From the NCBI RefSeq assembly GCF_964188315.1, contig NC_135658.1, positions 1,736,001 to 1,800,000 on the forward strand: a stretch of 64,000 nt of DNA, written 5' to 3'. The position numbers and the translations under genes are program-made. Positions 33,101 through 62,541 of the stretch are shown piece after piece (the stretch's first letter is position 1; each line of letters opens with the position of its first letter). This DNA comes from Podarcis muralis (Eukaryota). A model generated the notes under the pieces. That model made no database searches. It saw only the letters and a program-made list of their open reading frames with translations, and had not been told where the DNA came from.

Positions 33101-34290
33101 ATAAGCAGAGTTGTGTTGGATCAGGCCAATAGCTCATCTGGTCCAGCATCCTTTTCTGTGGAAAATAAGCGCAGCCTTACTGCCTGTGGCACACTCACGT
33201 GTGCTCTGACCTGTTGTGCAACTTGAGGATTGACGCCACATGGCTGCCTACAGTCCAAAGCGAAAAAGCAGATTAAGAAGACCAATCTGGTACCCAGGAA
33301 TTATCTACTGGAAGAGAAAGCGGTGGTGCTCCCAGGAAAGGCCACTCCAGTTTATCAAAAGCCTCCTTCAAGCATAGCTTGGGTCTGCTGGCACTGCCTT
33401 TGATGGAGCATCACAGGAGCCCAGCTGGAGGCCCAGACACCTTCCTGTGAATCGTTGGGGGCTTTCTGTGCAGAGGTGCCGACATGAGCGGGACTTGCCC
33501 ACAGGATATGGCCACCCCCCTTTCATGGGAAGATGTTCAAAGCGCAGACCCTGGCTGGCGCTGAGCTCCCCACCCAGTCCCGAGACCCCACAGAGTGTCT
33601 GCACAAACAGGAAGTTTTGAAGCGTGGAAAAGGCACCAGCAAACTAAGACATCTGAGGGAGCTAAGCTTCTCACTTCAGCAGCTTTGTGTGTCCACCCAC
33701 ACAGCCACCCAAAGGGATGTGGGCAAGAGGAACTGAAGCCTTTGCCCACTAGGCCCACTGAAACTCTTGATCCTGGGTATCTTAATGCTCTGTGCCAGAA
33801 AGATATAAGCCAACCAGAAGGAGAGAGAAAGAGAAGGCTAGCGGCAGCTCCAGAGCTTTGGCTGAGACCAGCACAACAGCTTCCCAGTTGGAGTCCTGAA
33901 GTGCTGGAGGACATCCTGGGTCAAGGCAACTCCTCTGCCAAAAATCCCTCCAGCATTGTCAACGAAGTTCCAGGAGGCCAACAGGAGACCAAGAGGGGCT
34001 AAGGGCTCTCTGGACAGCTAGGGAGGACCCAGCTAGGGTGGACTCCTCTGTTCCCCCTAAGGCCAAGGGAGCCAGAAAGGGCCCCGCAACACACACCTAC
34101 TTCCTCGGTGGCTTTCAGGCATCTGCTGAGGATGGTTTTTAATGTAATGTCTTCCTTCCCCGACTCTTATAAGCACCCCTAAGAAAACCCAGCCTGAGTA
34201 AAGGAGCACTGAGGCAAGGCCATTGTAATATCCACCATGCTGACTTTAGTGTATCAGGTGACCCTACAAGAGGCAAAGGTAAATCTGTTG

Positions 34291-36132
34291 CTAGGATGCA
34301 CGAGAGTTCGTAAGCTTCTCAACCGCTGCACCAATATCTCCATCTGTGTCAATTAAAGCTTGCAGGTTCAGTTCCTGGTTCTGGAAGCCCATCATCTGGA
34401 GCTGCTGCAGCTGCATCTGATAGAGGACCACTGGAGCTTGCTGATCCATTTCTTCGTCTTCCTCCTCCTCCTCCTCTCTTCCTCCTCTTCTTCTTCTTTT
34501 TCGTCGTCCCCGTCTTCTTTCTTCTGCTTTGGACTCACTGCTTTCTAACTCCAGGCTTTCGTCAGCCGAGATGAGGCTCCCTGCTTCCGAGGACGGGCTC
34601 TCTCCCTCGTCAGAGTCTTCCATGCTCTCGGGCTCAACGTCCGGGTCCGTCAAGGCTTGGAGGAAATCGGGCACTTCTCTTGTCAGGGTCAGCAGGCTCA
34701 TCTGCAGCTGGAGGAGAGCCTGGACCGCTCTGGGGTTGGTCAGCAGTGCAGCGGCCTCTGACCTCTCCAGTTTTGCAGGGAGCTGCTGCACCCACCCTTG
34801 AGGCAGAGAAGCATCGTTACTCTCGGGGGAGTTGCAATGGCTGAGGAATAACTGGGTAGGCCCATCGGGTTTCGAGAGGGCATTGGACATGTTCTGCATG
34901 AACTCCAGGTTCTCTGTGAGTTGGTGAACCATGTTCTGGATGCTTTCGGACTTGCTCAGCTCAGGCCGGACTCCCGGGCCTAAAGCAAGCAGAATGTAGC
35001 CCTGACCAGCATCATTATTGGTACCATTGAGGTCACTGTTGCAGAAATTGTCGCCACCACTGTTGTTGGGCTGAGGAGCCCAGGGATTTGGCAGGGGCTC
35101 TCTGTTTTCTGTCCTGGCCAGAGGGCTGATCCCCCCAGAAGGGGGCTTGTTCTCTGACGGGGCAAACGTGTTGCCCTGGAACTGGGCTTGGACTGCGTTC
35201 AGCATGGGGGCCTCTATGTCGTTGTAGAGCTGCTGCAAGGCACTGTACCCACCTGGGATGCTTTCGAGGTTGCTCAGGGCTCGGTCGTGGTTCCTGATGA
35301 TCTCGTCCATCACCGCCGGGCTGGTGGCCACGTCGATCATCTCCCGCAGGAACTCGGAGTTGTTGAGGATGTGGTTGATCTCAGGGTTCTGCTCAGCCAG
35401 CTGCTGCATCTGCGGGACGGACATGATCATCTGCCTGACCTGCTCGGTGTCGCCAAAGAGGTTCTGCACGAAAGGGTGCTGCATCACCTCGCTGATGAGC
35501 TCCTGCCGGGTCATGTCCTGTTCGTGGGCCTCGCCCACAATGTCAGACACGTCCATGGAGCTCAGGCCCAGAACGTTCATGCCGGTGACGCCAATGAGGA
35601 AGCCCAAGAGAAGCGGGTTGTTGTTCAAGGTGGAAGCATCCAGGTTCAGAGTGACCATCTGAAGCAAGAGGTTCTCCATGATCTGCGCGACCAGCTTGTG
35701 GCATGAAGCCATCAGCTCTTCCGGCTGGTTGCTCCACTCGGACAGGTCAAGGCTGTGCTCCGAGGAGGCCTCGCTGGAGAGCAACATGCTTGTGGGTGGC
35801 ACAGGCAGGAAGGAAGTGGGGCCAGTGTTTCCCGGGGAGGGCACAGGGTTCCCCGACAGCCTCCTTTGCGACTTGACGAAGAGGTGCACTTTGGACCCAC
35901 TGACAATCTTGTGCTGCGCCAGAGTGTCCTGGTCCTTGAGGATCTCGCCGGCAAAGATCAGCGACAGCTGCTCCAGGGGCATCTTGAAGCGCTCAGAGAT
36001 GAGCTTTTTGAAGTCCTGCACCAGGGTGCTCTCAGCCACCTCAAAGTGCTCCTTGCGCTTGAGGGTCTTGACGGTCACCTTGATGACGCGGGTGCCGGCG
36101 GCAGCCCCGTGGGGCTTCTTGCTCTCGGACAT
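34291..36132 (-). CDS. Intronless ubiquilin A (UBL-STI1-STI1-UBA), 613 aa
   Basis: UBL (IKVTVKT...[14 protein letters not shown]), STI1 region ([39 protein letters not shown]), C-terminal UBA ([29 protein letters not shown]). Confidence 0.93.
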
Positions 36133-36451
36133 GGCTGCTGAGGAGCAGAGGTTCAGGGAGAAGGAGGAAAGCGGGGCGTCTTCCTTTCCTTCCGGTGTGG
36201 CGGCGATGCTGCTGCTGCTGCTGCCGCTGCCCCCGCCACTTGTTGCCGTAGAGGACGCGAGAGGTGGGAAGGGGCCAGTGGTCTGCTGCTGCCCCCCTTT
36301 GTCTCAACACTAGCCAAGGCCAGAGCGCACATAACAGCGAGATGTTGCCTTCCTTTTCCGCTTGCTCACAACCTGGCAGGCACCTTCATTTTCCTCTTCT
36401 CCCCTCTGCTGCTGCCAGAAGACATGGCCTCTCTGTGAAGCTGCCTGGACT

Positions 36452-36475
36452 GTGAGGTCACCGCTGACCTCACAG
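36452..36475. promoter_or_regulatory. Dual CRE-like motif upstream of ubiquilin A (core of a perfect 11-bp inverted repeat)
   Basis: GTGAGGTCACCGCTGACCTCACAG; related motifs at 43037 and 53417. Confidence 0.55.
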
Positions 36476-36603
36476 AGAACCGGGAGGGGAGGCCCTGGTG
36501 GGCAAGGCCTCCATGGGTGCCCCCCTCCCCAATAAAGGGGAGTGCAGTGGTGCACTTAACTGGAGTGACTTGGGGCGGGGGAGCGTGCTTTCGTTGCTAA
36601 ATG

Positions 36604-37010
36604 CTTTCTTTTTTAAAAAAATTATTGGGAATTTTATTTACAATACAACATAAACCCCCCACCCCCCAATACAGAAATCCACCCTCATTAAACGTGAACA
36701 TAAGATACAATAAGCATAGCATACAACAATACAAACAACCAAATAAAAGATTTCCTTTATCCTGTATTTACTTCTTATAAGCTGTTTCCTTTATGAATAG
36801 TTATTAAGATTTTTCTAATTATAACTTAAATATCCACAAAGTCTCCTGCAAGAGATAGGAGTCCAGGTATGTATTTTAGGGCACTGTTTTGTGAAGTATT
36901 CTCTGCATTTCCCCCATGCTTTTCGAAACTCTTGTCTAGTGTGGTCTCTCATTGCCTCTGTTAATCTAGCCAGTTCAATAGACTCTAATAGACTTCTTCA
37001 CGCAGAACAG
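36604..37010 (-). mobile_element. L1 3' end
   Basis: Minus frame SIELARLTEAMRDHTRQEFRKAWGKCREYF, then 3' UTR with AATAAA. Confidence 0.7.
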
Positions 37011-37845
37011 ATTGAAACTGTGGAACTCATTGCCACAAGAGGCAGTGACGGCCACCAAGCTGGGTGGCTTTAAAAGAGGATTGGATGAATTCGTGGAGGA
37101 GTTGAGGGCTATCAGTGGTGACCAGCCAAGGTGGCTGTGCTCTGTCCTCCACATTTGAAGGCAGAAATGGTTCTGGATCCCAGTTGTTGGAAGCCACAGG
37201 AGGGGAGATGGTTGCTGCTCTTGTGCTGGAGTTCTACTTGCAGGTTTTCCACGGGGCTCTGGGGGGGGGCACTGTGAGAATGGGATGCTTTGAGGACACT
37301 GTGAGAAGAGCAGCCCTCCTCTTCTGTTCTTGGGAATTTGCTTATTGGGCCAGGCAACCTCTGCTAGGCTAGTTGGATTGCTTGCTTTTACTTACATTCC
37401 GCTTGGCCTTTGGCTTGGAATCAATTTGATTCCCTCCTCCTCTTTCTTTTTTCCTTTCTCCTGTGTTGGAACTCCTCTGTGTTGGAACTCCTGTTTGGGG
37501 ACTTCCCTGGCTTTCTTCTGGCCCATGTAGGACCAGTCTGGATAGTTAGCCTTGGTGAAGACTTGACGTTTTTATCCCCCCAAATGTTTTTGATTGAGTT
37601 TCCACTGAAATGAGGCTGTATTTTAATGTTTTAATGTATTTTAATCTTGTTTTTTAAGATGTATTTCATTCAATTGTTTTTATATTTGGTGTTAGCCGCC
37701 CTGAGCCTGGTCTTGGCTGGGGAGGGCGGGGTATAAATAATTTATTATTATTATTATTATTACACGCCGCTTTCCCACGATGTGTTGTGCCCAAAGGGGC
37801 TGACAGAAAGCACCCCTAACTTCAAAATAGAGAACACTGGGAATA

Positions 37846-38132
37846 GAAGAAGAAGAAGAAGAAGAAGAAGAAGAAGAAGAAGAAGAAGAAGAAGAAGAGT
37901 TTGGATTTGATATCCCGCTTTATCACTACCCGAAGGAGTCTCAAAGCGGCTAACATTCTCCTTTTCCTTCCTCCCCCACAACAAACCCTCTGTGAGGTGA
38001 GTGGGGCTGAGAGACTTCAGAGAAGTGTGACTGGCCCAAGGTCACCCAGCAGCTGCAGGTGGAGGAGCGGGGAATCAAACCCGGTTCCCCAGATTACGAG
38101 ACTACCGCTCTTAACCACTACACCACACTGGC
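37846..38132 (-). mobile_element. Squam3-like SINE with (TTC)n tail
   Basis: Matches other copies. Confidence 0.88.
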
Positions 38133-38739
38133 ACCATACAAAGGTACGAAATGCAGAACACGCCAGTAAGTTCAAAATAACAAAAGTCAACTATTTAGCA
38201 AACACAGAATAAATTCAATTCAATTAAAACAAAACAAAACCCCAGCCCATTAGGCTTAAGGACACAAATACAAAGTGGAAAATGTAAATTAACCAACAAT
38301 AATGTTCCTGGTGCTGGCCTTGCTGCTCTGCAAGGAGCCTGGCTTAAATGCAGTTCAGAGGGGAGGGCATGCCGCTGGCTCCCATGTCTCTACTCCAGAG
38401 GAGGCTGGCAGCAGCAAAAGGTCAATCTCGGGGAGGACAACGATGGTCCGTGTCTGCCTCAGCCTCCTCAAAGTACCAACTGCTGGTGCAGGCCTAATTG
38501 CACTTACCTCCTCCACGTTCTGTTGAAGGGGGGGCACTGGATATCTGCCCCCAAAGTTCCACCCTATTGGCACCAAGTGGCTGAGGATTTAATACATTTA
38601 CACACAAGTTTTCAATAACAACCCTTCCCAAAGAGGTTAGCAACCTACACACCAGCAACACTCTCTGCAGATCCTGCATTTCAGAGATACCACAATGTCA
38701 CGTTCAGGGATCCCCTTCTTTCTTTGAATTCCAGGAAGA

Positions 38740-38853
38740 AGAGCCAGCGTGGTGTGGTGGTTAAGAGTGGTGGACTCGTAATCTGGTGAACCGGGTTCGC
38801 TTCCCCGCTCCTCCACATGCAGCTGCTGGGTGACCTTGGGCTAGTCACACTTC
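38740..38853 (+). mobile_element. Squam3-like SINE 5' fragment
   Basis: AGAGCCAGCGTGGTGTGGTGGTTAAGAG head. Confidence 0.8.
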
Positions 38854-39093
38854 TTGGGCTTCCCATCGGGGGCATTGGGTTGGCCAGTGTGAAAACAGGA
38901 CACCAAGCTAGATGAACCCTCTTTGGCCTGATCCAGCAAGCGTTGGCCTCTTGCATGATCAACAGCAGTGGGATTTACACCTAGGAAAGGTCAAGACTCC
39001 CAATAGTTTGGAAGTCAGTTCTAATGGAAGTGTCAGGGTTGGGTAGCACCAGGAGCCAACTGTCCGCAAGAAGTCCTGGAGAAGATAGGCATT

Positions 39094-39305
39094 TATTTAT
39101 TTATTTATTTATACATACATACATACATACATACCCCACCCATCTGGCTGGGTTTCCCCAGCCACTCTGGGCGGCTTTCAACAGAACTTTAAAAACAGAA
39201 TAAAACTTCCAACATTAAAAACTTCCCTAAACAGGGCTACCTTCAGATGTCTTCTAAAAGCCAGAGAGTTGTTTATTTCCTTGACATCCGATGCGAGGGC
39301 ATTCC
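39094..39305 (-). mobile_element. L2-like LINE 3' end
   Basis: Same family as 25046-25460. Confidence 0.55.
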
Positions 39306-39538
39306 ATAGACAGATAGATAGATTTGGATTACATCATCCAAATATCTTTTTAAAGAAAGGTAAAAGTAAAGCAGGCGGATGGATGTAACTCGATGACTGT
39401 GAGCAGCTGTGTGAGATGGCAGATTGTGGGGACCTCACAAACAGCCACCTCTCCAACCTTTTTCCAATGCCAGGGTCTCTTTGGCAGTGTGACTGAGCAA
39501 ATGATGGACACTTTTAGACATCACTCTTCTCCACAGCA

Positions 39539-39885
39539 GGGACGTGGGTGGCGCTGTGGTCTAAACCACAGAGCCTAGGGCTTGCGGATCAGAAGATCGG
39601 CGGTTTGAATCCCCGCGACGGGGTGAGCTCCCGTTGCTCGGTCCCTGCTCCTGCCAACCTAGCAGTTCGAAAGCATGTCAAGTGCAAGTAGATAAATCGG
39701 TACCACTCTGGCGGGAAGGTAAACAGCATTTCCGTGCACTGCTCTGGTTCACCAGAAGCGGCTTCGTCATGCTGGCCACATGACCCGGAAGCTGTACGCC
39801 GGCTCCCTCGGCCAATAAAGTGACATGAGCGCCGCAACCCCAGAGTCAGCCACGACTGGACCTAACAGTCAGGGGTCCCTTTACC
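39539..39885 (+). mobile_element. Sauria SINE, full length
   Basis: TSD CTTCTCCACAGCAG flanking. Confidence 0.92.
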
Positions 39886-40523
39886 TTCTCCACAGCAGCC
39901 TTGCAGAGCAGGCCTGGAACACAGGGAATCCCACAAGCAATGATGTGAGGATGAGTGGGTGGTTTGGCTCCAGTGTGGACCTGGTTGTAGCATGAGGTGG
40001 TCTAGGCAGCAGCCGACTTCATCTGAAGCACAGAGCAGCTGGTTCTTGCTAGATGCCCAGAAAGAAGATGGGAACCATGTTGAAATAAACCAGCCAGGCT
40101 GCTTCCACAGACGGCACACTTATTGTGGCATGGCCACCCCTTTGCTTGTTTGCTTTTTTGTGGCATCTGCACAGCATCAGGAGGAAAACATCCTCCTCCC
40201 AGGTTTTCCCTTTTTGGCTCCCATCCCCTCTAGAGCTCACAAGATCCACCTTTTAAAGGTGCAATGTTTCAGAGAGTGGATGGCCCATGGCATTGCTTTT
40301 TAGCCTGTTAAGAACTATATAGTCATTTCCCAAATTGGTCTCTGTGTTCCCCTCTTCATGGCCTGCCTCTCCTCTGTAGGAATTGGCTCTGTCACCCCAA
40401 CTCTTCCCTTTCCAAATATCATTGTGACCATATCGCTCCTTCCTCCTTTGCTCCCTCACTCCTAAATTGTCGGCAAGTGGGGGCAATGGCGAGGGAGGGT
40501 GTGCTTAACCCTTTCTCCTCTCA

Positions 40524-41010
40524 GGAGAACCAGGGTGGTGCAGTGGTTAGAGTGCTGGTCTAGGACCTGGGAGAGCAGGGTTCAAATCCCCCCACTCTGC
40601 CATGAACTTCACCGGGAGGTGAGAGCCCCTGCCTCTCAGCCTAACTTACCTCACAGGCTTGTTGTGGGGATTAAATGAAGAAGAAGAAGAAGAAGAAGAA
40701 GAAGAAGAAGAAGAAGAAGAAGAAGAGGAAGAGGAGTTTGGATTTGACATCCCGCTTTATCCCTACCCGAAGGAGTCTCAAAGTGGCTAACATTCTCCTT
40801 TCCCTTCCTCCCCCACAACAAACCCTCTGTGAGGTGAGTGGGGCTGAGATACCTCAAAGAAGTGTGACTGGCCCAAAGTCACCCAGCAGCTGCAGGTGGA
40901 GGAGCGGGGAAGCGAACCTGGTTCCCCAGATTACGAGTCCACTACTCTTAACTGGGAGAACCATGTGCACCACCTTGAATTCTGCAGAGAAAAAAGATGG
41001 GATGCAAATG
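40524..41010 (+). mobile_element. tRNA-derived SINE interrupted by an antisense Squam3-like SINE (40677-40952)
   Basis: A/B boxes at 40531-40590; inner copy has a long (TTC)n tail in the opposite orientation. Confidence 0.75.
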
Positions 41011-41334
41011 CAGCAAATTAATTGATTAATGGTTCCAAATAAAATAAAAAAATAGGAGAGCAGTGAGACTGTTGGCTTTTGTTTATTACATTGCGTGGAC
41101 ATTAAAGTCAACCCATTTCAGAAGCCCCAGCCTACCAGAGGAGACCTTTTCATCGCCCTCACAGTCAGAACAGCCTCCGGCGGCCCCCCAACTGTTCAGC
41201 AAGAAGGGGACCCCTTCCCTCTAAGCCTCCTCCTCTTGTCCGTGGGCAAAGGGTCTGTCTGGGCTTTGTGGTGGCGCAACAAGTTTATTCTTGGGAGGGA
41301 GAAGATTTGAAGCTTGCCCAGGAGTTGGGTGGTC

Positions 41335-42732
41335 TTACTCAGAAGTGGCCGACCCTGGGCAGGGGTAGCCATTGACCCAGGGGCTCACCCCCGTGGAGTA
41401 GCCTCTCAAGCGCAGCATGAACCAGGGAACCAGCACAGGCGCCTCGGCCATCAGCGCCTGGAGCCCTTGTTCCATCTGCACCCAGGCCTGGATGGCTTTG
41501 GGGTTGGACATGGCGGCCACCATCTCTGGGCTCTGCATCTGCTGGGAGAAGTGGAGGACCTGCTGCTGCGCCTGCTCCTGTTGGGCCACTGGAGGCCTTT
41601 CTGCGGCCCGCAGGACGCTCTGCATGAGGGAGAAGATCATGCGCTTGGTGTAAGCGTTGCAGAGGTTGACAATCAGCTTCGGGATCTCGCTGGCATCTGG
41701 TGGTGGGAGGCTGCCCAGGCCAAACGCCCCAGCCCCGGACATGGGCGGCAGGTTGGGCATGGAGGAGCTTTGCCCTGGAGGGGGAGCCAGGCTGCTGAAG
41801 GCTGTGCTCTCCTCGCTGCAGGTGCTGTGGGTGCTGTGGGAGCTGTGGCAAAGGGGCAGAGAGCCCACACGATCCAGGCTCTCCAGCTGGGACCCATGGC
41901 TCCTCCCCAGGGTGGAGGCGAAGAGCTCCTGGATGGCGTTCAGCCCTGGTTCTGGTAGCTCACTGTTCAGCTGCCTCAGGGGGTTGTCCCCTCCAGGGAT
42001 GCTGCCGTGGAGGCTGATCAAGGCTTGGTCCGGAGCCTTCAGGTCCTGGAACATCTCTGGGTTCTTTGCCAGGTCCACAATCTCCCTCATCTTGTCCAGG
42101 ATCACCCTCATGATGTCCATATTGTCGAGTATGTGTCTGATGGCCGGGACCTGCTGGGCCAGCTGCTGGATCTCTGGGTTGGCCAGGATCACCTGCCGGA
42201 CCTTCTCGACAATCATCTCCGAGGTGGGCACCAGCTGCCACTCAGAGCTGGAGGGGGCTGCCTCAGGGGACCCCCAGAAGCCCCGCAGGCTCGAGCTGAA
42301 AGCTGGGGAGGGAAGGCTGCCCCCAGATGGTGTCAGGGCAGGTGGCCTGGTCTCGGGAACATAGGGAGACTGAGGAGGGTCTTCCAGGTCCCTTTTGAGA
42401 GTCCTGATCACCAGGTGTACAGTCATCCCGTCCGTGATCCCGCACTGGCGGAGCGTGTCCTTGTCCTTCAGGATCCTCCCAAAGTAGACCAGCACCAGCT
42501 GGCTGGTGTCGCAGGAGAAGTGCTTGGCAAGCTCCTCCTTGAACTGCTGGATGGTGCTGAGCTCTGGGAGCAGGAACTGGGCGCTGCTCTTGGGGGACTT
42601 TGCCGTGATGCAGATGAAGTTGGGGTTGGAGGCGAGGATGGGGCAGGCCTCTGGGGGCCCTTCCGGGTCTTTGTCCATGGTTTCCATGATGCACGGAGGA
42701 GGAAGAGGAGGAGGAGGAAGAGGGGCTTGCAT
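41335..42732 (-). CDS. Intronless ubiquilin B (UBL plus STI1, no UBA; UBQLNL-like architecture), 465 aa; alternative start at 42687
   Basis: UBL (LVLVYFGRILKDKDTL..TVHLVIR), STI1-like ANPEIQQL..NPEM, MSNPKAIQAWVQMEQGLQAL..EAP; no MGF/UBA. Confidence 0.88.
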   Translation of the reverse strand: MQAPLPPPPLPPPCIMETMDKDPEGPPEACPILASNPNFICITAKSPKSSAQFLLPELSTIQQFKEELAKHFSCDTSQLVLVYFGRILKDKDTLRQCGITDGMTVHLVIRTLKRDLEDPPQSPYVPETRPPALTPSGGSLPSPAFSSSLRGFWGSPEAAPSSSEWQLVPTSEMIVEKVRQVILANPEIQQLAQQVPAIRHILDNMDIMRVILDKMREIVDLAKNPEMFQDLKAPDQALISLHGSIPGGDNPLRQLNSELPEPGLNAIQELFASTLGRSHGSQLESLDRVGSLPLCHSSHSTHSTCSEESTAFSSLAPPPGQSSSMPNLPPMSGAGAFGLGSLPPPDASEIPKLIVNLCNAYTKRMIFSLMQSVLRAAERPPVAQQEQAQQQVLHFSQQMQSPEMVAAMSNPKAIQAWVQMEQGLQALMAEAPVLVPWFMLRLRGYSTGVSPWVNGYPCPGSATSE

Positions 42733-43036
42733 GGGAGAAGCGGGGCAGAGGCGTCTCGCTAGGCAGAGAAGGTGCCAGGGGAAGGACGGCGCTGCTTAAG
42801 TCACCTGGAGGACTGCGCTATGACAGCCACTGCGGTTGTGGTCCTTTAGGAGAGCAGCTGGCTGCCCCATACACTGGCGCTGGGGTGTGGCAAGCCTGAA
42901 GGCTCACGTGACAGCCCCCTCCCTGGACCTTCTTCTCTCCCCTCCCTCCCTCCCTCCCTCCTCCTGAGCGAAGGAGCTGCTCTCCACACCGCAGGCACAT
43001 CAAGGAGTGGGGGGGGGGGTCACTGTGACATCGCCA

Positions 43037-43060
43037 GTGATGTCAGCAATGATGTCGCCG
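43037..43060. promoter_or_regulatory. Dual CRE-like motif upstream of ubiquilin B
   Basis: GTGATGTCAGCAATGATGTCGCCG, 21/24 identical to 53417-53440. Confidence 0.6.
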
Positions 43061-43192
43061 CCACCCTCAAAGCTCTTGGTAGCTGGCAGAAGGAGCCTCC
43101 TGGAGGAATTGCAGCCCTCAGGTCCCCTCTGGAAGGGACAGGGCTGCTGCTCCGAGGCAAGGCCACCTGAGGCCAGGTCCTAGAGTTACCAC

Positions 43193-43500
43193 TTCATAGA
43201 ATTGAAGAGTTGGAAGGGATCCCCAAAGGTCCTCTATTCTGACCCCCTGCAATGCAGGAATCACAGCTAAGGAATCTCTGACAGATGGCCATCCAACCTC
43301 TGCTTATAGACCTCCATTGAAGGAGAGTCTGCCGCCTTCTGGATGAGTCTGCTCCATAGCTGTCAACTTTCCCCTTATTTAAAGGAAAATTCCCTTATTC
43401 CGAATAGGATTCCTTCCAAGAAAAGGGAAAAGTTGACAGCTATGGTCTGTTCCACCATCAAGCGGTTCAAGTTACAAAATACTTAGGCTCTCCTGGGGTG
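43193..43500 (-). mobile_element. CR1 3' end containing a second 90-bp hAT mini-MITE (43355-43444)
   Basis: CR1 tail in reverse; MITE TIR CATAGCTGTCAAC, TSD GTCTGCTC/GTCTGTTC. Confidence 0.75.
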
Positions 43501-43649
43501 TGTGCTGGAATCTTTTTGGGGCCTGGTGGGGAGCTTTTATCCTCCTAGGCTTTTCAGAAACTCATTTTTTCATGCATTTCAGCTTAAAAGACAGCAGCCC
43601 TCTTTTACTCTCCCCTTTGGATTTTAAAGCTTTTCATACTGATTTCTTT

Positions 43650-44200
43650 TTTAAAAAAAAAGAATACTTTATTTAGAATTCAACAATAATAAAGGGAAAA
43701 ACCACAGTAGTTGTTACATCAATTCATTACAATTAACCTGATTTTAACAATATACAAATAGTAATAGAAAAATTACACATCACTTTTAACTTACTGAAGT
43801 TTTCATATTACACTTTTTTCTCTTTATCTCCTTCTTAACAAATCAAAAAGAGAAAGGCTAAAAAAGGAGGCACAAAAAAAGAAAAGAGAAAAGGAAGAAG
43901 AAAAGGGGGGAAGGGGGAAGGGGAACAAAAGAAGGAAACAAAACAAATATATTTGACTTCCGAGTAGACTCATTGTATTATTATTTCTACTATTTTTTCA
44001 CACACAGTTCCAATATGATAGAATACTTTATAGTGATTTTATGCTGCTCTATGATAGCATTATATCGGTCACGCTTGGCGTGGATTGTTTTAGGGTTAGA
44101 ATTTGAATATTGCATTTCTATTGATTCCCCCCCCCCTTCCCGACAATGGGTGGTGATAACATTCCAAAGAAGGAGGGATAGTGAGCTAGATAAACAGAAT
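43650..44200 (-). mobile_element. Probable L1-type 3' end
   Basis: AATAAA on the minus strand with purine/pyrimidine-biased 3' UTR; no clear peptide match. Confidence 0.4.
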
Positions 44201-44428
44201 ACATTTCTCTCCTTTTCCAAACCGTTTCCTGTGCCTGACAAGCCGCAGAAAAGATTCCTGCACTGCAGGGGGTTGGAATAGACAACGTTTGTGGTCCCTT
44301 CCAACTCTACAATTCTATGGTTCCATGAGTTCCCTCATCCTAAACAATCCTTACCTTTCCACCTCTGGACAAGACCTTCCTCACTGCACTGCACCAAATA
44401 TCATATTACTGGCACAAAATAAATGTTA

Positions 44429-44484
<56 letters not shown>

Positions 44485-44909
44485 CACTTCTTCTTCTTCT
44501 TCTTCCTCTTCTTTGGTGGCCCCTCGTAGCCAAGTTAAAACATGGTTTTAACAATGAGTCTGTAAGTGTCTGTGGAGGCCAATTCTGGACCCACACATCC
44601 TTCCACAGGGGGGACATTGGTTTCCGGGCAGGAGTTGATCCCGGTGAGGGTTTGGCAAGCGTGCCTTCCTCTAAGCACATTTCTCCCTTGCGTCCTGAGT
44701 TCGAGCATCTTCAAAGTCCATGGCACCTTTGGTCAAGGCTGTCACAGGCCCGTGTTTTCCAGTTGTCAGTGTTTATATTACATTTTTTCCAGATTTGCCT
44801 TGAGGCAGTCTTTAAACCTTTTTTGTTGACCACCAGCATTACGCTTTCTGCTTTTAAGTTCGGAATAGAGTAGCTGCTTTGGAAGACGATCATCAGGCAT
44901 TTGCACTCG

Positions 44910-45150
44910 CTGGATCATCACCTTGTTGTGGTGAGTGGGCTTGCATTATCCTATGACCCTTGTGAGCGAAGCCATCGGGAATCTCGTACTCCCAGCAGGG
45001 TCACCCAAGGTGGTAAGGTCAAAGAGAAGGAGCTAGACAAAGAATGATCCAAGAAGTCCTCAAAGGCAGAACAGGTGGATGATAACAAGTGGTATGTTAC
45101 AATGGCTGTGAAGGCGGATGAAGGCTGCAGCAGATAGGAATCTACTGGTT
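44910..45150 (+). mobile_element. RTE-like LINE 5' leader remnant
   Basis: ACCTTGTTGTGGTG..GGGCTTGC..CAGGGTCACCCAAG resembles RTE/BovB 5' ends (from memory). Confidence 0.4.
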
Positions 45151-45505
45151 TGTCGTGACTACTTCATACCATCGGAAAAGAGCCCTACTGTGAAGACTGT
45201 GCGTTGGTCAGCGTGCACTGATCTACACACATAAAACAAATTCACCCACAGGCGTCTTCCAAAACACACACACACACACACACCTAGGAGCTCATCTGTA
45301 CAATTCTTGATGCATTCTGCAGAAGGCACATGCAGAAGACGACGGTAGGGGCAATCTTTTCTGGAAGATATTTGTATTTTGAGGAGTTTAGTGATCTGAC
45401 ATGGTCGTCTCTTCCTGCCTCTCTTTACCTCCCCTCTCTGTCTCTTGTTCTGCTCTTTGATGGCTGAGAATAGCCTTTTAATGCCCTGGTTTGTGGAAGG
45501 AAGTA

Positions 45506-46721
45506 CCGTATTTTTCCCCTCTATAACATGCAGATTTTTTCTCCTAAAAAGGAAGGGGAAATGTCTGTGCGTGTTATAGAGCGAATGTGTGGTCCCTGGA
45601 GCCGAAAAATCAGGCAAAAATCAAATTGCGCTTCACGGAGAAGGGAAACCTGAAAAGAGGAAGCGGCTGCTTTCCTGCATTCTGCCTCAGGGTCTTACTG
45701 CCCACCCTCCTCTGTTTCGTTGCTGTGTTTGCTCAAACGGAACAAAGAGCAGGGAAAGCCCCTCCCCTCCAGGCAAGCAGAGTGTGTTCCTTCTAATTCC
45801 TCTCTGTGCTCCGGTGCTGCTGGGGGAGAGGGAGAGGGGGGGAGGGAGAGAGAGAGGGGGAGGGAGAGAGGGGGGGAGGGAGAGAGAGAGAGAGAGAGAG
45901 AGATGGCTGGCTTGGGTGGGGGGAAACTTTTGCCTTTCTTGCCTCCCTCCCGTTAAATCCCTCTCCTGCATTCTTAGCCAGCTGCTTCTCTGCACACCCC
46001 TCTCATGTCCCTTCTTTGTTTTTCCTTTGCTCCCCACTTAAAATGTGGTTAAAAAGCATAGATCCACATGGATCCTCAGGATCTTTGCATTGGGTCACCC
46101 CAAATTCACCACCAGATCACATAGCATGTCCATGGCTACAGCCTGCCCCCCCCCCAAAATCACACACCCACTATTGCCTGGGGCTGCAATGGTGCAAAAA
46201 CGTGGTTAAAAAGCATGGATCCATATGGATCCTCAGGATCTTTGCATTGGGTCACCCCAAATTCACCATCAGATCACATAGCATGTCCATGGCTACAGCC
46301 TGCACCAAAAAAATCACGCACCCACTGTTGCCTGGGGCTGCAATGGTGCAAAAACGTGGTTAAAAAGCATGGATCCATATGGATTCTCAGGATCTTTGCA
46401 TTGGGTCACCCCAAATTCACCATCAGATCACATAGCATGTCCATGGCTACAGCCTGCACCAAAATAATCACGCACCCACTGTTGCCTGGGGCTGCAATGG
46501 TGCAAAAACGTGGTTACAAAGCATGGATCCACAGGAATTCTCAGGATTTTTGCATTGGGTCACCCCAAATTCACCACCAGATCACATGTCTGTGGCCACA
46601 GCATGAAGCACAAAAATGATACATCCACTGTTTCATTCAGAATGTTTTTTCCCTTGTTTTCCTCCTCTAAAAATGATGTGCGTGTTATGGTCAGGTGCGT
46701 GTTATAGAGCGAAAAATACGG
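45506..46721. mobile_element. Tc1/mariner-pogo-type MITE, 1.2 kb, with an internal tandem array
   Basis: TIRs CCGTATTTTT(C)CCTCTATAAC / GTTATAGAGCGAAAAATACGG; TA TSD at 45504-45505 and 46722-46723. Confidence 0.85.
46045..46590. repeat. About 154-bp tandem repeat, 3 full units plus a partial unit
   Basis: Units start at 46045, 46202, 46356, 46510. Confidence 0.92.
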
Positions 46722-47216
46722 TAATAGCGTTGGGCACCTTCCTTCTTTGAAGTGAGACATTGGAGAGGTGGCTAGCTAAGGAATCATCTGCGCTAGCTAG
46801 TCGGGCAAGGCACGTAGGCTAACAAGTTAGCTATCTGTAAATCAAATGGTTTGGGGGCATAGCTCTCAGAAGCTCATGCAACCTGAGTCCACCTGGGGTC
46901 CCTTCACCACTTCTTGGCGGCTTCCCAGTGGCAGATTGAAGTGCTTCCTTGGTAATGTATATAATGCTTATTGTTTAGAATAAAATCTTTAATCTTCTCA
47001 CTTGTGCTTGTATTGCTTCTGAATCTCATCAAAAGAACCATCTGCATTTGGCAAGACAACAGCCTAGCTCAGGGTGCTGAACTCAGCACTGCTATGGTTA
47101 CTCTTGGTGTATTAAAAAATGTAGATGAATACATCAGATGGAAACCTCTCTCCCTTCATTCTAGGGATCACCCTCCATCCCTGCCCCTTTCCTTGTCAGT
47201 GAATGGGGAGCTGCTT

Positions 47217-48173
47217 TTAGGTAACTGGTCTGTTGAAACATTGGTGGAACAAACTGGTGACTCTCCTCAGGATCTCCTTGGTCTTCACCCCATAAACAAT
47301 GGGGTTCAGCATGGGAGGGATGAGGACATATAAGTTGGCCAGTAGGATGTGAACATAGCCTGGGATGTGGTGGCCAAAGCGATGAGCAAAGAAGGAGAAG
47401 AATGCAGGTGTGTAGAACATGAGGATGACACAGAGGTGGGAGCCGCAGGTGCTGAGTGCCTTCAGGCGAGCGTCTTTGGAGGAGAGCCGAAACACAGCCC
47501 TCAAGATCAGACCGTACGATGCTGCTATCAGCAAGGTGTCCACACCGATGGCCAAGATGGCCACCATGAAGCCATACCAGATGTTGACCGTGATGTCGGA
47601 GCAAGCCAGCCGGGCGATGCCCATGTGCTCGCAGTACGTGTGGGGAAGGATGTTGCGTTGGCAGAACGTCAAGCGCTTGACGAGGAAGATGACCGGGAAA
47701 ATCACGCAGAAGCTTCTGACCATGGCAGCCAGCCCAATTCTCCGGATGACTGAACTGGTCAGCAAGGTGGTGTAGCGCAGCGGGTCGCAGATGGCGATGT
47801 AGCGGTCAAAGGCCATGGCCATGAGGATGGCCGACTCGGCGATGAAGACGCTGTGGATGAAGAACATTTGGGCTAGGCAACCTTCGAAGGAGATCTCCCC
47901 GGCCTTGAACCAGAAGATGGCCAGCATTTTGGGAGCGGTGGAGGTGGACAGAAGCAAGTCGGTGACAGCCAGCATGGAGAGGAAGAAGTACATGGGCTGG
48001 TGGAGGCTGCGCTCTGTGAAGATGATGAACAGCAGAGTGCTATTCCCCACCAGAGCCACAATGTACATCAGGCAGAAGGGGATGGAGATCCAGATGTGAA
48101 AGGCCTCCATCCCTGGGATGCCAGTCAAGATGTAGGTGGTGGGGGGCAAGGAGCTGTGGTTGGCTGGCAGCAT
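47217..48173 (-). CDS. Class I olfactory receptor family 52 (OR52B-like), intact, 318 aa
   Basis: [55 protein letters not shown]; NHS glycosylation site. Confidence 0.93.
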
Positions 48174-48599
48174 CTGGGGCCTCGGAAGGGCTTCCTGGTA
48201 GCTGTGGTGGATGTAAGCAGGGATCCGTTCCCTCCCCAGCAGGCACTATGGATGGAAGACAGTTCACAGGGAAGAAAATCTACTGGGATCTGGAACAAAT
48301 CCTGAGGAAGATGAGGCAAGCATGTCTTCTGCTGCTCCAAAGGGGAGGACCCAAACTGATGGATTCAAACCACAAGAAAGGAGATTCTGATAAGCATTAG
48401 AAATAATTTTCTGAGGCCAAAAGCTGTTCGACAGCAGAACAGATGCCCTCGATGGACTCTCTTTCATAGGAGATTTTAAAAACAAAGTTGGGTATTCTTT
48501 TGTATTGTGCTTTCTGCATTTACGAAGACAGCAGAGTCAACACAGAGTTAAGCCAGAATGTGGAAACCCTGCAGCCGTGTAGAGGGTCTGTCTGGTGGG

Positions 48600-48690
48600 C
48601 ATAGCTGTCAACTTTCCCCTTTTCTTGTGAGGAATCCTATTCGGAATAAGGGAATTTCCCTTTAAAAAATGGGAAAAGTTGACATCTATG
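48600..48690. mobile_element. Third copy of the 90-bp hAT mini-MITE (opposite orientation)
   Basis: Perfect TSD CTGGTGGG. Confidence 0.88.
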
Positions 48691-49939
48691 CTGGTGGGTC
48701 TCCTCTCCTGCCCGCCCTGAACAAGGAAGCTTTGTGTGTGCTAACAAATAATAAATAAATAATACACACGTCTAGAGAACTCATTCAGCTGTCAAACCTC
48801 TCCTTCCTTCCTTCCTTCCCTCCCTCTGGCATTTGTGTTCGGTTAATCTGACTTTAGCAGGAATGGCACAGCAGACACGCAAAGGTGTATGAAAACACTT
48901 CTGTGTTTCTTTGAAGAGGGTCCACCTGGCAGCAATGTGGTTTTTTAAAAAAAACCCATTTGTAATTTTTCAATAGGTTGCAAGTTTAGTGCATATACCT
49001 CTTTAATTCCTCCATAATTTCCATCTGACATTGGACTTCCCTTCTGTGGTTCTCCGTATTTTCCAATATTGCTGCATATTATAACTTATTCTGCACTCTG
49101 TCCTCACCATACTATTCCAAAAGCCGTCGTTTACTGCTGCTCATTATTCAAATCCTACTTGTGTCTTTATATGCTTACAATAGCTTTTTAAGCATTCTGC
49201 AAATGGTTTCCAGTCCTCCTTAAAACCTGCCTTTTCTTGATCTCTAATTTCACTGGGCAGCAATGTCAAGGGCCCTGCCTGAGAACGTCCTTCCTAGTCC
49301 AAGCTGCCCCTCCCAACCCCTGGGCTGACCCCCTTCAGCACCCCCGTCCAACAGATTTGAACCACACCTACCTGCCCCAGATATTTTGCCCACTCCTCCT
49401 TGGAAGGCAGCAGCAGGAACTGGCTCTGTGCAAAGTTCTCACCTGCCTTTAGCTCCAGCAAGCAGAGAAGCTCAGAGATGGGATTTGGGTCCCCCAGGCA
49501 GCAGCAGAGACAGGCATTTGAAGGAGGCTGGGTCCAAGGAGCTGCGGGACTTGGGCCGCCTCGTGTCTCCTTGGGAGTCCTGAGGGGGGTTTGGAGGCAG
49601 GTGCTGGTGCTGGTGGAGGAGAAGGGACCTCCTGGGACCCACTTTTCTCAGGCTCAGGGGGAATTTTCAAAAGGCAAGGAGAGCATAACCCTTAGTTTGC
49701 TCTGGGAGGCTAAACGATCTTTTCTTCTGTTGCACAGTAAAGTACTTGCCTTGTAGTCAGGTCCCAGTCCCACCTGCGCCTTGGGTTCAAGAGAGTCTGG
49801 GATTCCCCTAGACATTCTCAGTGGGCATGTTTCCCTACACTCAAACTCTGTGGCCCAAGAACCCCACCCCTGACTCAGTGGGCTTCACAGATAGCCGTGG
49901 ATTTGAACCAGGGTATTTCCCCGTTTGCAGAGAATCAGA

Positions 49940-50185
49940 GACTCAACTTGTAGAGTTGGGAGGGACCCCTAGAGTCATGAAGTCCAACCCCCTGCAATGC
50001 AGAATCCCAATTAGTTCATCCATGACAGACGGCCATCCAACCTCTGCTTGAAAACCCCCAAGGAAGGAGAGCCCACCACCTCCCAAGGGAGACTGTCCCA
50101 CTGTTGAACAGCTCTTACTGTCAGAAACTTCTTCCTGATGTATCTTCAGAACCTCCTTTGTTGTAATTTGAATCCATCGGTTCAA
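49940..50185 (-). mobile_element. CR1 3' end
   Basis: Reverse CR1 tail (CCCCCTGCAATGCAG...GGCCATCCAACCTCTGC). Confidence 0.75.
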
Positions 50186-50222
50186 GCTTGCTCCACCCGC
50201 CATGCGGAAGCCCTTCAGCCTA

Positions 50223-50453
50223 CAGCGGTACCTCAGGTTGCAGATGCTTCAGGTTACAGACGCTTCAGGTTACAGACTCCGCTAACCCAGAAATAGTACC
50301 TCAGGTTAAGAACTTTGCTTCAGGATGAGAACAGAAATCGCATGGCGGCAGCGGGAGGCCCCATTAGCTAAAGTGGTGCCTCAGGTTAAGAACAGTTTCA
50401 GGTTAAGAACGGACCTCCAGAAAGAATTAAGTTCTTAACCTGAGGTACCACTG
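50223..50453. mobile_element. Tigger-like MITE, 231 bp
   Basis: TIRs CAGCGGTACCTCAGGTT / AACCTGAGGTACCACTG; TA TSD. Confidence 0.88.
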
Positions 50454-51720
50454 TATTTGAAGATGGCTATCATGTCCATTCGCTGTCTTTCCTTCTCCAT
50501 CTCCATTCTTTGTCCGAAAGGGTCCACCTCGATCTCCAGAGCAGCCTTGAAGCCATAGGGATTCACAGCTCCTAGGAGCTGAAGCACTTTTGCCCCCAGG
50601 GGGTTTTTTGGCTGCTGAGAAGAGGCTGCTGGAGTAGGTGGTCCCCTCTTTGGCCTGGCCCAGCAGGTGCTTTCCACTGCTTGATCGTTGTTGTTGTTGT
50701 TCTTAAACCCACCCTCAAAGCATTTTACAAAAAGATGAAACAAGAAAACCAAGAACAAATTGCAGCCATACCATATCCCCCAACATTCATCAGATGAAAA
50801 TAGGGACATTTCTCTCACACGCACCCCTCCCCCAATGTCCCTCATTGATGTCCCATTTTTGTGACCCCCCCCCCCAAGCATTTCCTATCTGGAGGACGCT
50901 TGCAAGCATTCCCTCCCCCCACAAGTAGGACACCCTCCAGCGTCCTGAGAAAACCCATTGATCCCAATTTTATTCTTTGGCAGATTTACAAAAAGAAAAA
51001 CACAGATAAATAAATTTAGATGCAGACACACAAATCATTTCTTTTCTTTTCTTTTTTAAAAAAGTCAAGACTCCTTGTGCTCCACTCTCCATTTCTTTAC
51101 CCCCAGGGTGGCTCTGCCCTCTGCCTGCATCGCAGAGCTGGCGCATCATGCAGGCGGGGCCTTGGCAGTGGTGGCCTCTCTTCATCCTCACCTGCTCTTC
51201 AGCAGCTGCCATGAGCAGCCCAAGGGAGGAGAGGCCATGGAGAGACAATGGGATGCTCCTTTGCCACCACTCAGGGAAAATGCCGGCTCACCACAAACTC
51301 AGTGGTGGCAGCACTGGCAGGGGGAATAGGGACACTCTGGGAACCAATCAGAAGCTGGGATGGCTTCTGCATACCTGAAGGAGCATCTCCACCCCCACCG
51401 TCCAGCTCGGACACTGAGATCCAGTGCTGAGGGCCTTCTGGTGGTTCCCTCATTGCGAGAAGTGAGGTTACAGGGAACCAGGCAGAGGGCCTTCTTGGTA
51501 GTGGCACCCGCCCTGTGGAATGCCCTCCCTTCAGATGTCCCTGGGAAATCGGGGCGCTTGGAGGGTACGCCTACCAACAGAGGAGCCAACAGAGGAGACT
51601 TTTTGAAAGATTTAAAGCCTTTTAATCACAAACCATGTAATCCACGCCTTTGCAGAGCTCCAGCATCGGCACAGCAGCTGCAGGAGTCCAGCCTTGGCTC
51701 AGCTTCCGTCCTCTTCCGCC

Positions 51721-53229
51721 TCAGAGTTTGTACGTCCGCTTCTGCTTGGAAGACGGCTGCGCGGACGAGCCCCGCAGGCGGCTGGCGGTCTTCACGCCAG
51801 CTAAGAAGTCAGCGCCCACCAGAGTCTCCAAGATCTGCTGGGCAGTGACATCCTGGCGCCCCACCCTCGAGACGGGGGGCACCATGTCGCAGAGGGAAGT
51901 GATGGAGTGCGCCCTCCGCGCGGGCCGCTCGGATCTGCCTCGCCTCTCTGTTCCCGGCTCGTCTGTGGCGAGTGCCTGCAGCCTCTGCTGGATTTCTACC
52001 AGCCCCTGGATCTCCTTGGGGCTCCAGTTGGCCAACAGGATGTCTGTGCTTTGAATCTGCTGGAGGAGGTCTGGGACCTGCGGGGCCGCCTGCCCCCGGG
52101 GGCTCCTGGACACGGAGGTGTTCCTGCGGACCATCTTGGCCACCACCTCCGGGGTGTGGCTGCTCCTGGAGGGGCTGCTAGATGCAAGGTTCTGCATCAG
52201 ATGCTTTATGATTTGGTGGAGGAGGTTCTTCACAGCTGCCGAGGCGAGTTGTCCTGTCTCTCCCCTGAAGGCGCCGCTTTCCCCGTTGCTCTGATCGTTG
52301 CCATTGGGTGCTAGGTTCTGGGCACCAGGCTTTGGAGGCCAAGTTCTGGGAGAAGGCAGCCTCTCCCGGGCCCTCTCAAGCCTTTCACCATGGTCAAAGG
52401 TGGGTGGGTGGCCCCCCAGGGATCCTGGCGAGGGGCTTGCCCCGCACCGCTTTGGAATGGCCTTCTGCCCTAGTCCTCTTTGTGCCTCAGGGAACGCACC
52501 CTGAAGGACACTGTTGTTGTCTCCACCAGGGACGCTTCCAGGGCAAGTGGTGGCCTGGGGAGGCGATTTGATGAACTCCTTCACGACCGCTGGGTTCCTT
52601 GCCAGTTCCACCACCAACCTCATTCCTTCTGGGGAGCTGAAGACGTGGCTGATCTCAGGGGCTTTCTGCATCACCTGCCGCACCTGCGGGTTGCTGGTGA
52701 CCAGCTCCTTCATCAGGTCAGGGCTGGAGAGCTTGCTCTGGATGAAGGGGTTCTCCAGCAGTTGCACCATCATGTCTGGGTTGGACATGAGCTGGCTCTG
52801 GAACTCTGAAAAGTTGGCTGTGTTGAGGCCCAGGCTGGCGGTCAGCTCCCGGAGGCCATCGCTGGCAAAAGCGTCTCCCCGAGGAGGCTTCTGATCTGGG
52901 GCAGTGCTGGTAGGGCTGGCGGAAGCCTGTCGGGACAGGCGCCCCCGGGGAGACCGGATGACCACGTAGACTGTTGCGTCGTAGTCTAGGTGGATGCCAT
53001 GCTGGCCAAGGGTCTTGTGGTCTTTCAAGATCCTTCCGACATACACCAGCACAACTTGGTCAGGAGAAGAGGAGAAGTGCCTGGCGACGTGTTCTTTGAA
53101 TTCTCGGACCAACATCTCCCTGTGGACCAGAAACTCTTCCTTCTGCCACGGAGTCTTCACGATGATCCGAACAACTTGGGGCTCAGCGGCTCTGAGGTCA
53201 ACCCCCGGGATTCTCTGGCTTTCGACCAT
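51721..53229 (-). CDS. Intronless ubiquilin C (UBL plus STI1, no UBA), 502 aa
   Basis: UBL (VVLVYVGRILKDHKTL), UBQLN1-like LGLNTANFSEFQSQLMSNPDMMVQLLENPFIQ, ELARNPA; divergent C-terminal half; first ATG at 53229. Confidence 0.88.
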   Translation of the reverse strand: MVESQRIPGVDLRAAEPQVVRIIVKTPWQKEEFLVHREMLVREFKEHVARHFSSSPDQVVLVYVGRILKDHKTLGQHGIHLDYDATVYVVIRSPRGRLSRQASASPTSTAPDQKPPRGDAFASDGLRELTASLGLNTANFSEFQSQLMSNPDMMVQLLENPFIQSKLSSPDLMKELVTSNPQVRQVMQKAPEISHVFSSPEGMRLVVELARNPAVVKEFIKSPPQATTCPGSVPGGDNNSVLQGAFPEAQRGLGQKAIPKRCGASPSPGSLGGHPPTFDHGERLERARERLPSPRTWPPKPGAQNLAPNGNDQSNGESGAFRGETGQLASAAVKNLLHQIIKHLMQNLASSSPSRSSHTPEVVAKMVRRNTSVSRSPRGQAAPQVPDLLQQIQSTDILLANWSPKEIQGLVEIQQRLQALATDEPGTERRGRSERPARRAHSITSLCDMVPPVSRVGRQDVTAQQILETLVGADFLAGVKTASRLRGSSAQPSSKQKRTYKL

Positions 53230-53416
53230 AATGCTGCCAAGATTTGAGAGCAAGAAGCAAAGACCAAAGTCAGGCTTGGCTTCTCATCGCACTCCAAAGT
53301 GGTCCTGCCTTCTTTCCTCTGTCACCACGCAAGCTGTGGGTTCCCTCTTCTCGACATCCCCTCCCTCCCCCAGCCCAGAGGCCCTACACAACCTTCTGGT
53401 GTGGAACCCGTGATTT

Positions 53417-53440
53417 GTGATGTCAGCGCTGAGGTCGCCG
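53417..53440. promoter_or_regulatory. Dual CRE-like motif upstream of ubiquilin C
   Basis: GTGATGTCAGCGCTGAGGTCGCCG. Confidence 0.6.
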
Positions 53441-62349: not shown

Positions 62350-62541
62350 TCAGCGCCACTTCCCAGGCTGCCAGAGCAGCTGAACCAGGCACTCGCGGAT
62401 CTGCTTGGTTTTCACCCCATAGACAATGGGGTTCAGCATAGGGGGCACTGTGACAAAGACGTTGGCCAGCAGGATGTGAGCAGGGCGAGGGATGCTGTTG
62501 GCTGCAAACCTGTACGCGAAGATGGAGAAGAAGGCTGGGAC
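62350..62541 (-). pseudogene. OR52 3' fragment (TM6 to stop) cut by the CR1 insertion
   Basis: Reads [50 protein letters not shown]...*; OR homology ends abruptly at 62541. Confidence 0.9.

Follow-up and report, generated by a model that had tools for sequence, protein, structure and literature searches.

Three ubiquilin genes, here called A, B and C, lie among the other genes of a class I olfactory receptor cluster in Podarcis muralis, and upstream of each stands a short sequence built from similar octamers repeated at intervals of 12 bp. The stretch that holds them (64,000 nucleotides, none of them N, of contig NC_135658.1, assembly GCF_964188315.1, positions 1,736,001 to 1,800,000 of the forward strand) is referred to below as the window. 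The locus raises the question of whether the likeness between the three upstream regions was inherited with the genes, and what kind of control it represents. A first description made from the letters of the window, the sequence-only reading, took the motif for a dual variant of the cyclic AMP response element (CRE), passed on by gene duplication and probably serving as a spermatid-specific switch. The comparisons that follow leave little doubt that the element is a real, conserved component of ubiquilin promoters. Taken as a whole, the reading favoured here on balance is that of an inherited, promoter-proximal pair of CRE-class basic leucine zipper (bZIP) sites, most likely activated by CREM in round spermatids. 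The element is very old and of a known, probably testis-type, kind.

The paired octamer element

The sequence-only reading had quoted 24-mers at 36452, 43037 and 53417, lying 320, 305 and 188 bp from the ATGs of A, B and C, respectively, with 21/24 matches between B and C and 18/24 between A and C. The sequences, distances and match counts are all as it gave them. The elements themselves are as follows.

36450-36475, minus strand: promoter element of A; its two octamers, in 12-bp phase, occupy 36453-36460 and 36465-36472 and read TGAGGTCA / TGACCTCA in gene sense
43026-43057, minus strand: promoter element of B; three units in 12-bp phase, at 43026, 43038 and 43050
53418-53437, minus strand: promoter element of C; octamers at 53418-53425 and 53430-53437, reading CGACCTCA / TGACATCA in gene sense

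The element of A forms a perfect 11-nt inverted repeat, as had been noticed before (36450-36460 / 36465-36475, with a spacer of 4 nt), and both octamers fall within it. The 24-mer quoted for B does contain two octamers 12 bp apart, but it covers the units at 43038 and 43050, whereas alignment with orthologues identifies the two gene-proximal units, 43026 and 43038, as the ancestral pair, followed by CAGTGA in gene sense. The unit at 43050-43057, upstream of that pair, is a lacertid-specific, in-phase 12-bp duplication of one unit. Tandem Repeats Finder reported no array in B; the three units are defined by pattern scan and alignment.

Within the window the pattern TGANNTCR-N4-TGANNTCR was found by scanning only at the A, B and C loci. 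When the 500-bp upstream regions of B and C are compared, their best ungapped 24-mer is the motif itself, and its 21/24 matches were reached in 1 of 300 dinucleotide shuffles. The 18/24 between A and C is weak taken alone (28 of 300 shuffles reach it), yet it falls at the same position of C and in the same register. A stricter, strand-symmetric pattern, TGANNTCA-N4-TGANNTCA, was sought in 245 kb comprising the window and ten orthologous loci; it matched 11 times, each time upstream of a ubiquilin ATG, where 0.05 matches were expected from the density of octamers.

A second inverted repeat, of 9 nt, surrounds the motif of A at 36430-36438 / 36470-36478 (TCTCTGTGA / TCACAGAGA). Its downstream arm, TTCACAGAGAGG, is kept in several squamates and not in the turtle or the bird.

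Conservation across sauropsids

Orthologous loci were compared from Rhineura, Tiliqua, Crotalus, Eublepharis and Pogona, from the turtle Mauremys and from the bird Dromaius. Upstream of the A orthologues the pair is present in all seven species and always with the 12-bp spacing; the 26-mer of the window's A is identical in Rhineura. The pair also precedes the B orthologues of Tiliqua, Crotalus, Eublepharis and Pogona and the C orthologues of Rhineura, Tiliqua and Eublepharis; for these two genes it was present wherever the promoter lay in reach, sometimes with one unit degenerate. The sequence-only reading had staked its case on conservation in orthologous promoters, and such conservation is found for all three genes. 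In an alignment of nine A sequences the motif is the 5'-most conserved block, with 70-97% identity, and the flank upstream of it falls to 41-46% in turtle and bird.

Aligning 17 sites, that is 34 octamers, from the A, B and C clades separates what is constant from what varies. All 17 have the 12-bp spacing; GA..TCA does not vary in either unit, and the CAGT on the 3' side hardly does. The majority consensus, TCTG-TGACGTCA-GCGG-TGACGTCA-CAGTCC, contains two canonical CREs, and 24 of the 34 octamers differ from TGACGTCA by 0-1 mismatch. The central CG is nevertheless kept in only three; the centre dinucleotide is otherwise CA (8), TG, GG or CC (7 each). A TGAC/GTCA half-site is intact in 28/34. 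The most common octamer class is TGACCTCA/TGAGGTCA, with 11 members, followed by TGACATCA/TGATGTCA, with 10, and the latter is the only class found in most B copies. The intact half-site switches sides between orthologues, as is expected of a symmetric dimer site on DNA.

The sequence-only reading had also pointed to the palindrome of A and its AGGTCA half-sites. Both exist, and both are common to Rhineura, but neither is the conserved feature, because they are missing from the A genes of snake and turtle and from every copy of B. The exact TGAGGTCA, which places AGGTCA within the octamer, occurs in both units of the window's A and in most A and C orthologues, and is missing from every B copy and from the A genes of Crotalus and Mauremys. 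In the window's C the corresponding unit reads TGAGGTCG on the opposite strand.

About 20 bp upstream of the pair, five of the nine A sequences (L001-L003, L007 and L009) carry a CCAAT box, CCACCAAT. In the window's A (about 36488-36496) this box is mutated to CCACCAGG.

Promoter homology and age of the paralogues

Beyond the 24-mers the sequence-only reading saw no other upstream similarity; this proved to be incorrect. When the orthologue alignment of A, B or C is turned into a profile, it matches the promoters of the other paralogues at the motif, over 70-125 nt, with E values from 1e-8 to 0.04 (database of about 10 kb), and the matches extend downstream to a shared purine tract of the GGGGAGAAGAGG type. 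The homology between the paralogue promoters thus covers about 100 nt rather than 24. This profile-level homology, the common 12-bp spacing, the common flanks and the sauropsid-wide extent of each clade support the proposal that the genes were duplicated together with their promoter.

In a maximum-likelihood tree clades A, B and C each received 100/100 support. Clade A holds squamates, turtle, alligator and bird, clade B squamates, turtle, alligator and tinamou, and clade C squamates and turtle. Since each holds both squamates and turtle, the paralogues and their common element are older than the split between squamates and the turtle/archosaur lineage. The tree joins B to marsupial UBQLNL and UBQLN3-like proteins with only 85/88 support, and the placement of A is weak. 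The nearest non-sauropsid relatives of the B protein are marsupial 'ubiquilin-like proteins' (UBQLNL), which were retrieved ahead of UBQLN1/2/4. UBQLN3, UBQLN5 and UBQLNL, together the 'UBQLNL group', have been described as a mammal-specific expansion with spermatid-specific expression (Marín 2014, PMC4230246). That view is qualified by the present comparison, which shows the ubiquilins of the olfactory receptor cluster, together with their promoter, to be older than the sauropsid radiation.

The transcript of gene A and the type of promoter

RNA reads and contigs from four runs, X1 to X4, were compared with gene A (window positions 33700-36750). The features that they define are listed here.

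34221-36404, minus strand: unspliced A transcript; contig of 2175 nt from run X1 of a related lacertid, about 1% divergent, colinear with the genome, no joints, zero flank depth
36393-36404, minus strand: purine tract GGGGAGAAGAGG, the 5' limit of both transcript contigs and the probable start region
34245-34250, minus strand: ACTAAA, a probable variant signal for polyadenylation, with the ends of both contigs 10-25 nt beyond

The second of these contigs, L011, comes from a skink and represents the orthologous A gene with homologous 5' and 3' limits. The A mRNA is therefore unspliced, and its leader measures about 272 nt. A splice acceptor had been suspected just before each ATG, an arrangement that would make the motif intronic or put it ahead of a short first exon; for A, the colinear, joint-free contig of run X1 refutes this. 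The 3' untranslated region measures only about 56-70 nt; ACTAAA is conserved, and likely serves as the poly(A) signal in place of AATAAA.

In both contigs the 5' match to the genome stops at the homologous GGGGAGAAGAGG, which follows the proximal octamer at a distance of 48 nt, or 47 nt in Tiliqua, so that the octamer centres lie at about -52 and -64 relative to this limit. The sequence-only reading required a motif close to the transcript start, and for A it is found some 50-65 bp upstream of the contig limit. Similar purine tracts follow the motif of B and C at 45-75 nt. No TATA-like sequence was found within 80 nt downstream of the motif in any of the three promoters, and their observed/expected CpG ratios of 0.25-0.42 are not those of CpG islands. 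The A transcript is present in run X1 of the related lacertid, but three RNA runs made on the window species lack it, which indicates that A is not expressed in every tissue.

Two side observations concern the RNA data. An AT-rich repeat at 36658-36750, adjoining the A promoter on its upstream side, has contig or read coverage in each of the four runs, even where the A transcript is missing, and is likely an expressed interspersed repeat. The skink contig begins with 25 GC-rich nucleotides (positions 1-25 of L011), which may resemble 28S ribosomal RNA. As a candidate upstream exon they were rejected, since neither the 10 kb upstream of the gene in Tiliqua nor any part of the window contains a match; they are probably an assembly chimera.

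A probable paired CRE-type site and the rival readings

To judge by its sequence, the element is likely a CRE-class bZIP site. The proposed mechanism is that of a proximal cis-regulatory element in a TATA-less, non-CpG-island promoter, which the three paralogues would have inherited from a common ancestor: a pair of CRE-type sites of 8 bp (TGA-NN-TCA), set in a constant 12-bp register some 50-65 bp upstream of the presumed transcription start. Each octamer would most likely be bound by one dimer of a CREB/CREM/ATF-class factor, and the two dimers may well work jointly, as the constancy of the 12-bp spacing suggests. Ancestrally the sites would have been canonical TGACGTCA, of which most copies later lost the central CpG and kept one TGAC/GTCA half-site. 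The resulting 'CpG-free CRE-like' form would be the one that characterizes haploid-specific promoters of the testis under activation by CREM-tau. Where A and C have the TGAGGTCA/TGACCTCA versions, these may also fit a composite of CRE and nuclear receptor site (CRE/NR), open to the repressor GCNF. That CREM drives the element as a spermatid switch is about an even proposition.

The comparison with testis promoters draws on work on a haploid-specific human promoter. TGAGGTCA, the CRE/NR site, is bound by CREM-tau and by GCNF (Rajković et al. 2010, PMC2853129); a change at position 4 is tolerated for CREM binding, whereas positions 5, 7 and 8, in the GTCA half, are critical. A 26-nt fragment with TGTGAGGTCA at -62/-37 is enough for spermatid-specific expression of a reporter, and in haploid genes the CRE-like sites known so far are found at -50 +/- 20. 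The CpG-free CRE-like 8-mers TGAGGTCA and TGACCTCA and the 5'-extended TGTGAGGT are overrepresented in promoters specific to the testis (all PMC2853129). The sequence-only reading had likened the variant octamers to CREM-tau target sites, and the TGAGGTCA/TGACCTCA forms do match the published 8-mers in sequence and TATA-less type of promoter, and apparently in position.

Several observations pull the other way. The units TGAGATCA, TGAGCTCA and CAACCTCA have no intact half-site. The 5' limit of the A transcript is a contig end, not cap-mapped, so that transcription may in truth begin slightly more 5'; the limit also falls on a CAG-repeat/purine tract, at which an assembly may be interrupted. 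A third contig, L013, spans the motif together with 140 nt of sequence upstream; because it also extends 230 nt beyond the poly(A) site, it is taken for DNA. Mouse Ubqln3, Ubqlnl and Ubqln5 are not among the rows listed of CREM chromatin immunoprecipitation sequencing, nor in the Crem-knockout tables, which is no evidence either way; they are likewise not in the mouse target supplements for RFX2 or SOX30.

The octamer TGACATCA is the 8-bp TPA response element of the c-jun promoter, a site of the Jun/ATF2 type. The pair could serve another dimer class, such as Jun/ATF2-type heterodimers, CREB/ATF1 or the spermatid factor CREB3L4, and control need then be neither CREM-dependent nor haploid-specific. 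The rank of TGACATCA/TGATGTCA as second commonest class, its exclusive use in most B copies and the missing mouse CREM targets are in keeping with this, whereas the apparent position of about -50 to -65, the TATA-less, CpG-poor promoter and the TGTGAGGTCA form fit the published CREM/haploid pattern, and the mammalian relatives are spermatid-specific (PMC4230246); such a reading is unlikely. Were the element instead a nuclear receptor site, with inverted AGGTCA half-sites for GCNF or a relative, its CRE likeness would be incidental. Both octamers of window A and Rhineura A do hold AGGTCA in a perfect inverted repeat, and GCNF does bind TGAGGTCA (PMC2853129). This is nonetheless improbable, as AGGTCA is missing from the A genes of Crotalus and Mauremys and from each of the five B orthologues while GA..TCA is invariant, and GCNF prefers direct repeats without a spacer (DR0) or extended half-sites (PMC2853129).

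A role at the RNA level is very improbable. It would require a start further upstream, such that the motif is transcribed and forms a hairpin in the 5' leader of A; the perfect inverted repeat of A and the span of contig L013 are what suggest it. The palindrome is absent from Tiliqua, Crotalus, Eublepharis, turtle and bird, however, and the two transcript-like contigs begin downstream of the motif, whereas L013, running far past the poly(A) site, looks like DNA. That the resemblance is due to chance or to a fragment of an interspersed repeat has next to no probability: the ease with which shuffling reproduces the A/C match speaks for it, but the excess of strict matches, all at ubiquilin promoters, already refutes it, and the motif is kept across sauropsids where its flanks have diverged. 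As common denominators of the 17 sites, the MAF/ARE half-site TCAGCA and the TALE homeodomain core TGTCA were also tried and rejected, each fitting only a subset.

The conserved leader of gene A

Between the inferred start and the coding region of A lies a second conserved sequence.

36258-36397, minus strand: conserved leader block of A; about 125-140 nt, 65-90% identity from lizard to bird, with flanks at 33-46%
36366-36389, minus strand: upstream open reading frame (uORF) within the block; seven codons, MKVPARL and then a stop

The block is more conserved than the A protein, which is only about 45-51% identical to its turtle and bird orthologues. In 9/9 aligned sequences the uORF keeps its length and position and follows the pattern M[KR]xP[AL][RG][LWR]-stop, with synonymous change at the Pro codon. 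One might guess at translational control by the uORF or the leader. RNA structure in the leader is unsupported, the RNAalifold covariation term being only -0.45, with 2 pairs showing double changes, and an Rfam scan of 36050-36550 returned only a chance-level match to mir-2954 (score 20 bits, gathering score 96, E 0.23).

A broader proposal would unite these parts. The fixed-phase CRE-like pair and the uORF-bearing leader of A may form one regulatory module, already possessed by the amniote from which all 'testis' ubiquilins descend and also standing upstream of mammalian UBQLN3, UBQLNL and UBQLN5. The expansion of the UBQLNL group would then not be mammal-specific, and the 12-bp register would be explained by two bZIP dimers whose binding is obligately cooperative. 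This is put forward tentatively, as a possibility with the balance against it. If true, the cooperative 12-bp register would be a grammar undescribed for CREM targets.

Genes of the locus

The three ubiquilin genes are intronless, and their products match the ubiquitin and UBQLN1 Pfam domains.

34291-36132, minus strand: open reading frame (ORF) of ubiquilin A, 613 aa
41335-42732, minus strand: ORF of ubiquilin B, 465 aa, without UBA domain
51721-53229, minus strand: ORF of ubiquilin C, 502 aa from the ATG at 53229

Protein A is 93% identical to proteins of Lacerta agilis and Podarcis muralis, and protein B 96% identical to one of Podarcis raffonei. In Pogona the ubiquilin locus is flanked by a globin gene. 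Crotalus has a fourth ubiquilin, of 564 aa, downstream of A (L003 16356-18050), with a single TGATGTCA at -249 and no evident second unit. The A-like protein of Mauremys (687 aa, L009 10001) has its annotated start only 41 nt past the pair, within sequence that in the other species aligns as leader, so that the annotated protein probably reaches too far at its N-terminus. Elsewhere in the window, an ORF of 274 aa at 62492-63316 has GDSL-lipase and OSK-domain matches and may be the esterase-type ORF1 of a long interspersed nuclear element (LINE).

Implications

Among the switches of haploid genes in mouse and human, the best known is a CRE-like site close to the start of a TATA-less promoter, and little is documented of its evolutionary depth. 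The present locus allows one such element to be traced base by base through three paralogue clades and, for A, through lizards, snake, turtle and bird. With the half-sites and the 12-bp spacing constant and the central CpG repeatedly replaced, the orthologues amount to a natural mutagenesis series of which positions matter, and they offer a clean case for asking whether two adjacent CRE-type sites cooperate. The practical stakes are modest: going by titles cited in PMC7040208, mouse Ubqln3 and Ubqlnl are reported to be dispensable for fertility.

Comparison with known promoters and testis ubiquilins

The closest counterpart is the CRE/NR site in promoter C of the human mitochondrial glycerol-3-phosphate dehydrogenase gene (PMC2853129). 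The lizard element resembles it in its core and 5' extension, TGTGAGGTCA, in its apparent position near -50 and in being CpG-free. Promoter C belongs to the haploid-specific class and its site binds CREM-tau and GCNF in vitro; the lizard element is likened to it by sequence, position and promoter type. Promoter C has one octamer, whereas the lizard element has two in a fixed 12-bp register, with a centre dinucleotide that varies among orthologues. TATA-less haploid-specific mouse promoters (Somboonthum et al. 2005; Yamashita et al. 2008, both as described in PMC2853129) likewise have CpG-less variant CREs near the start; a 12-bp tandem pair and ubiquilin genes are not among the features given in that description. 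The CRE of testis ACE, which the sequence-only reading gave as an example, would belong with these variants.

The ubiquilin paralogues UBQLN3, UBQLN5 and UBQLNL, which are testis-specific and postmeiotic in mammals (PMC4230246), offer the closest mammalian comparison for lizard A, B and C. A literature search found no paper linking promoters of the UBQLN3 group to CREM and none describing a paired element for ubiquilin genes. Mammalian genes of the UBQLNL group are intronless and lie among olfactory receptor genes, beside the beta-globin cluster. The lizard ubiquilins, intronless and among class I olfactory receptor genes, share this setting. The UBQLNL group has been published as specific to mammals (PMC4230246), whereas the A, B and C clades described here are sauropsid-wide.

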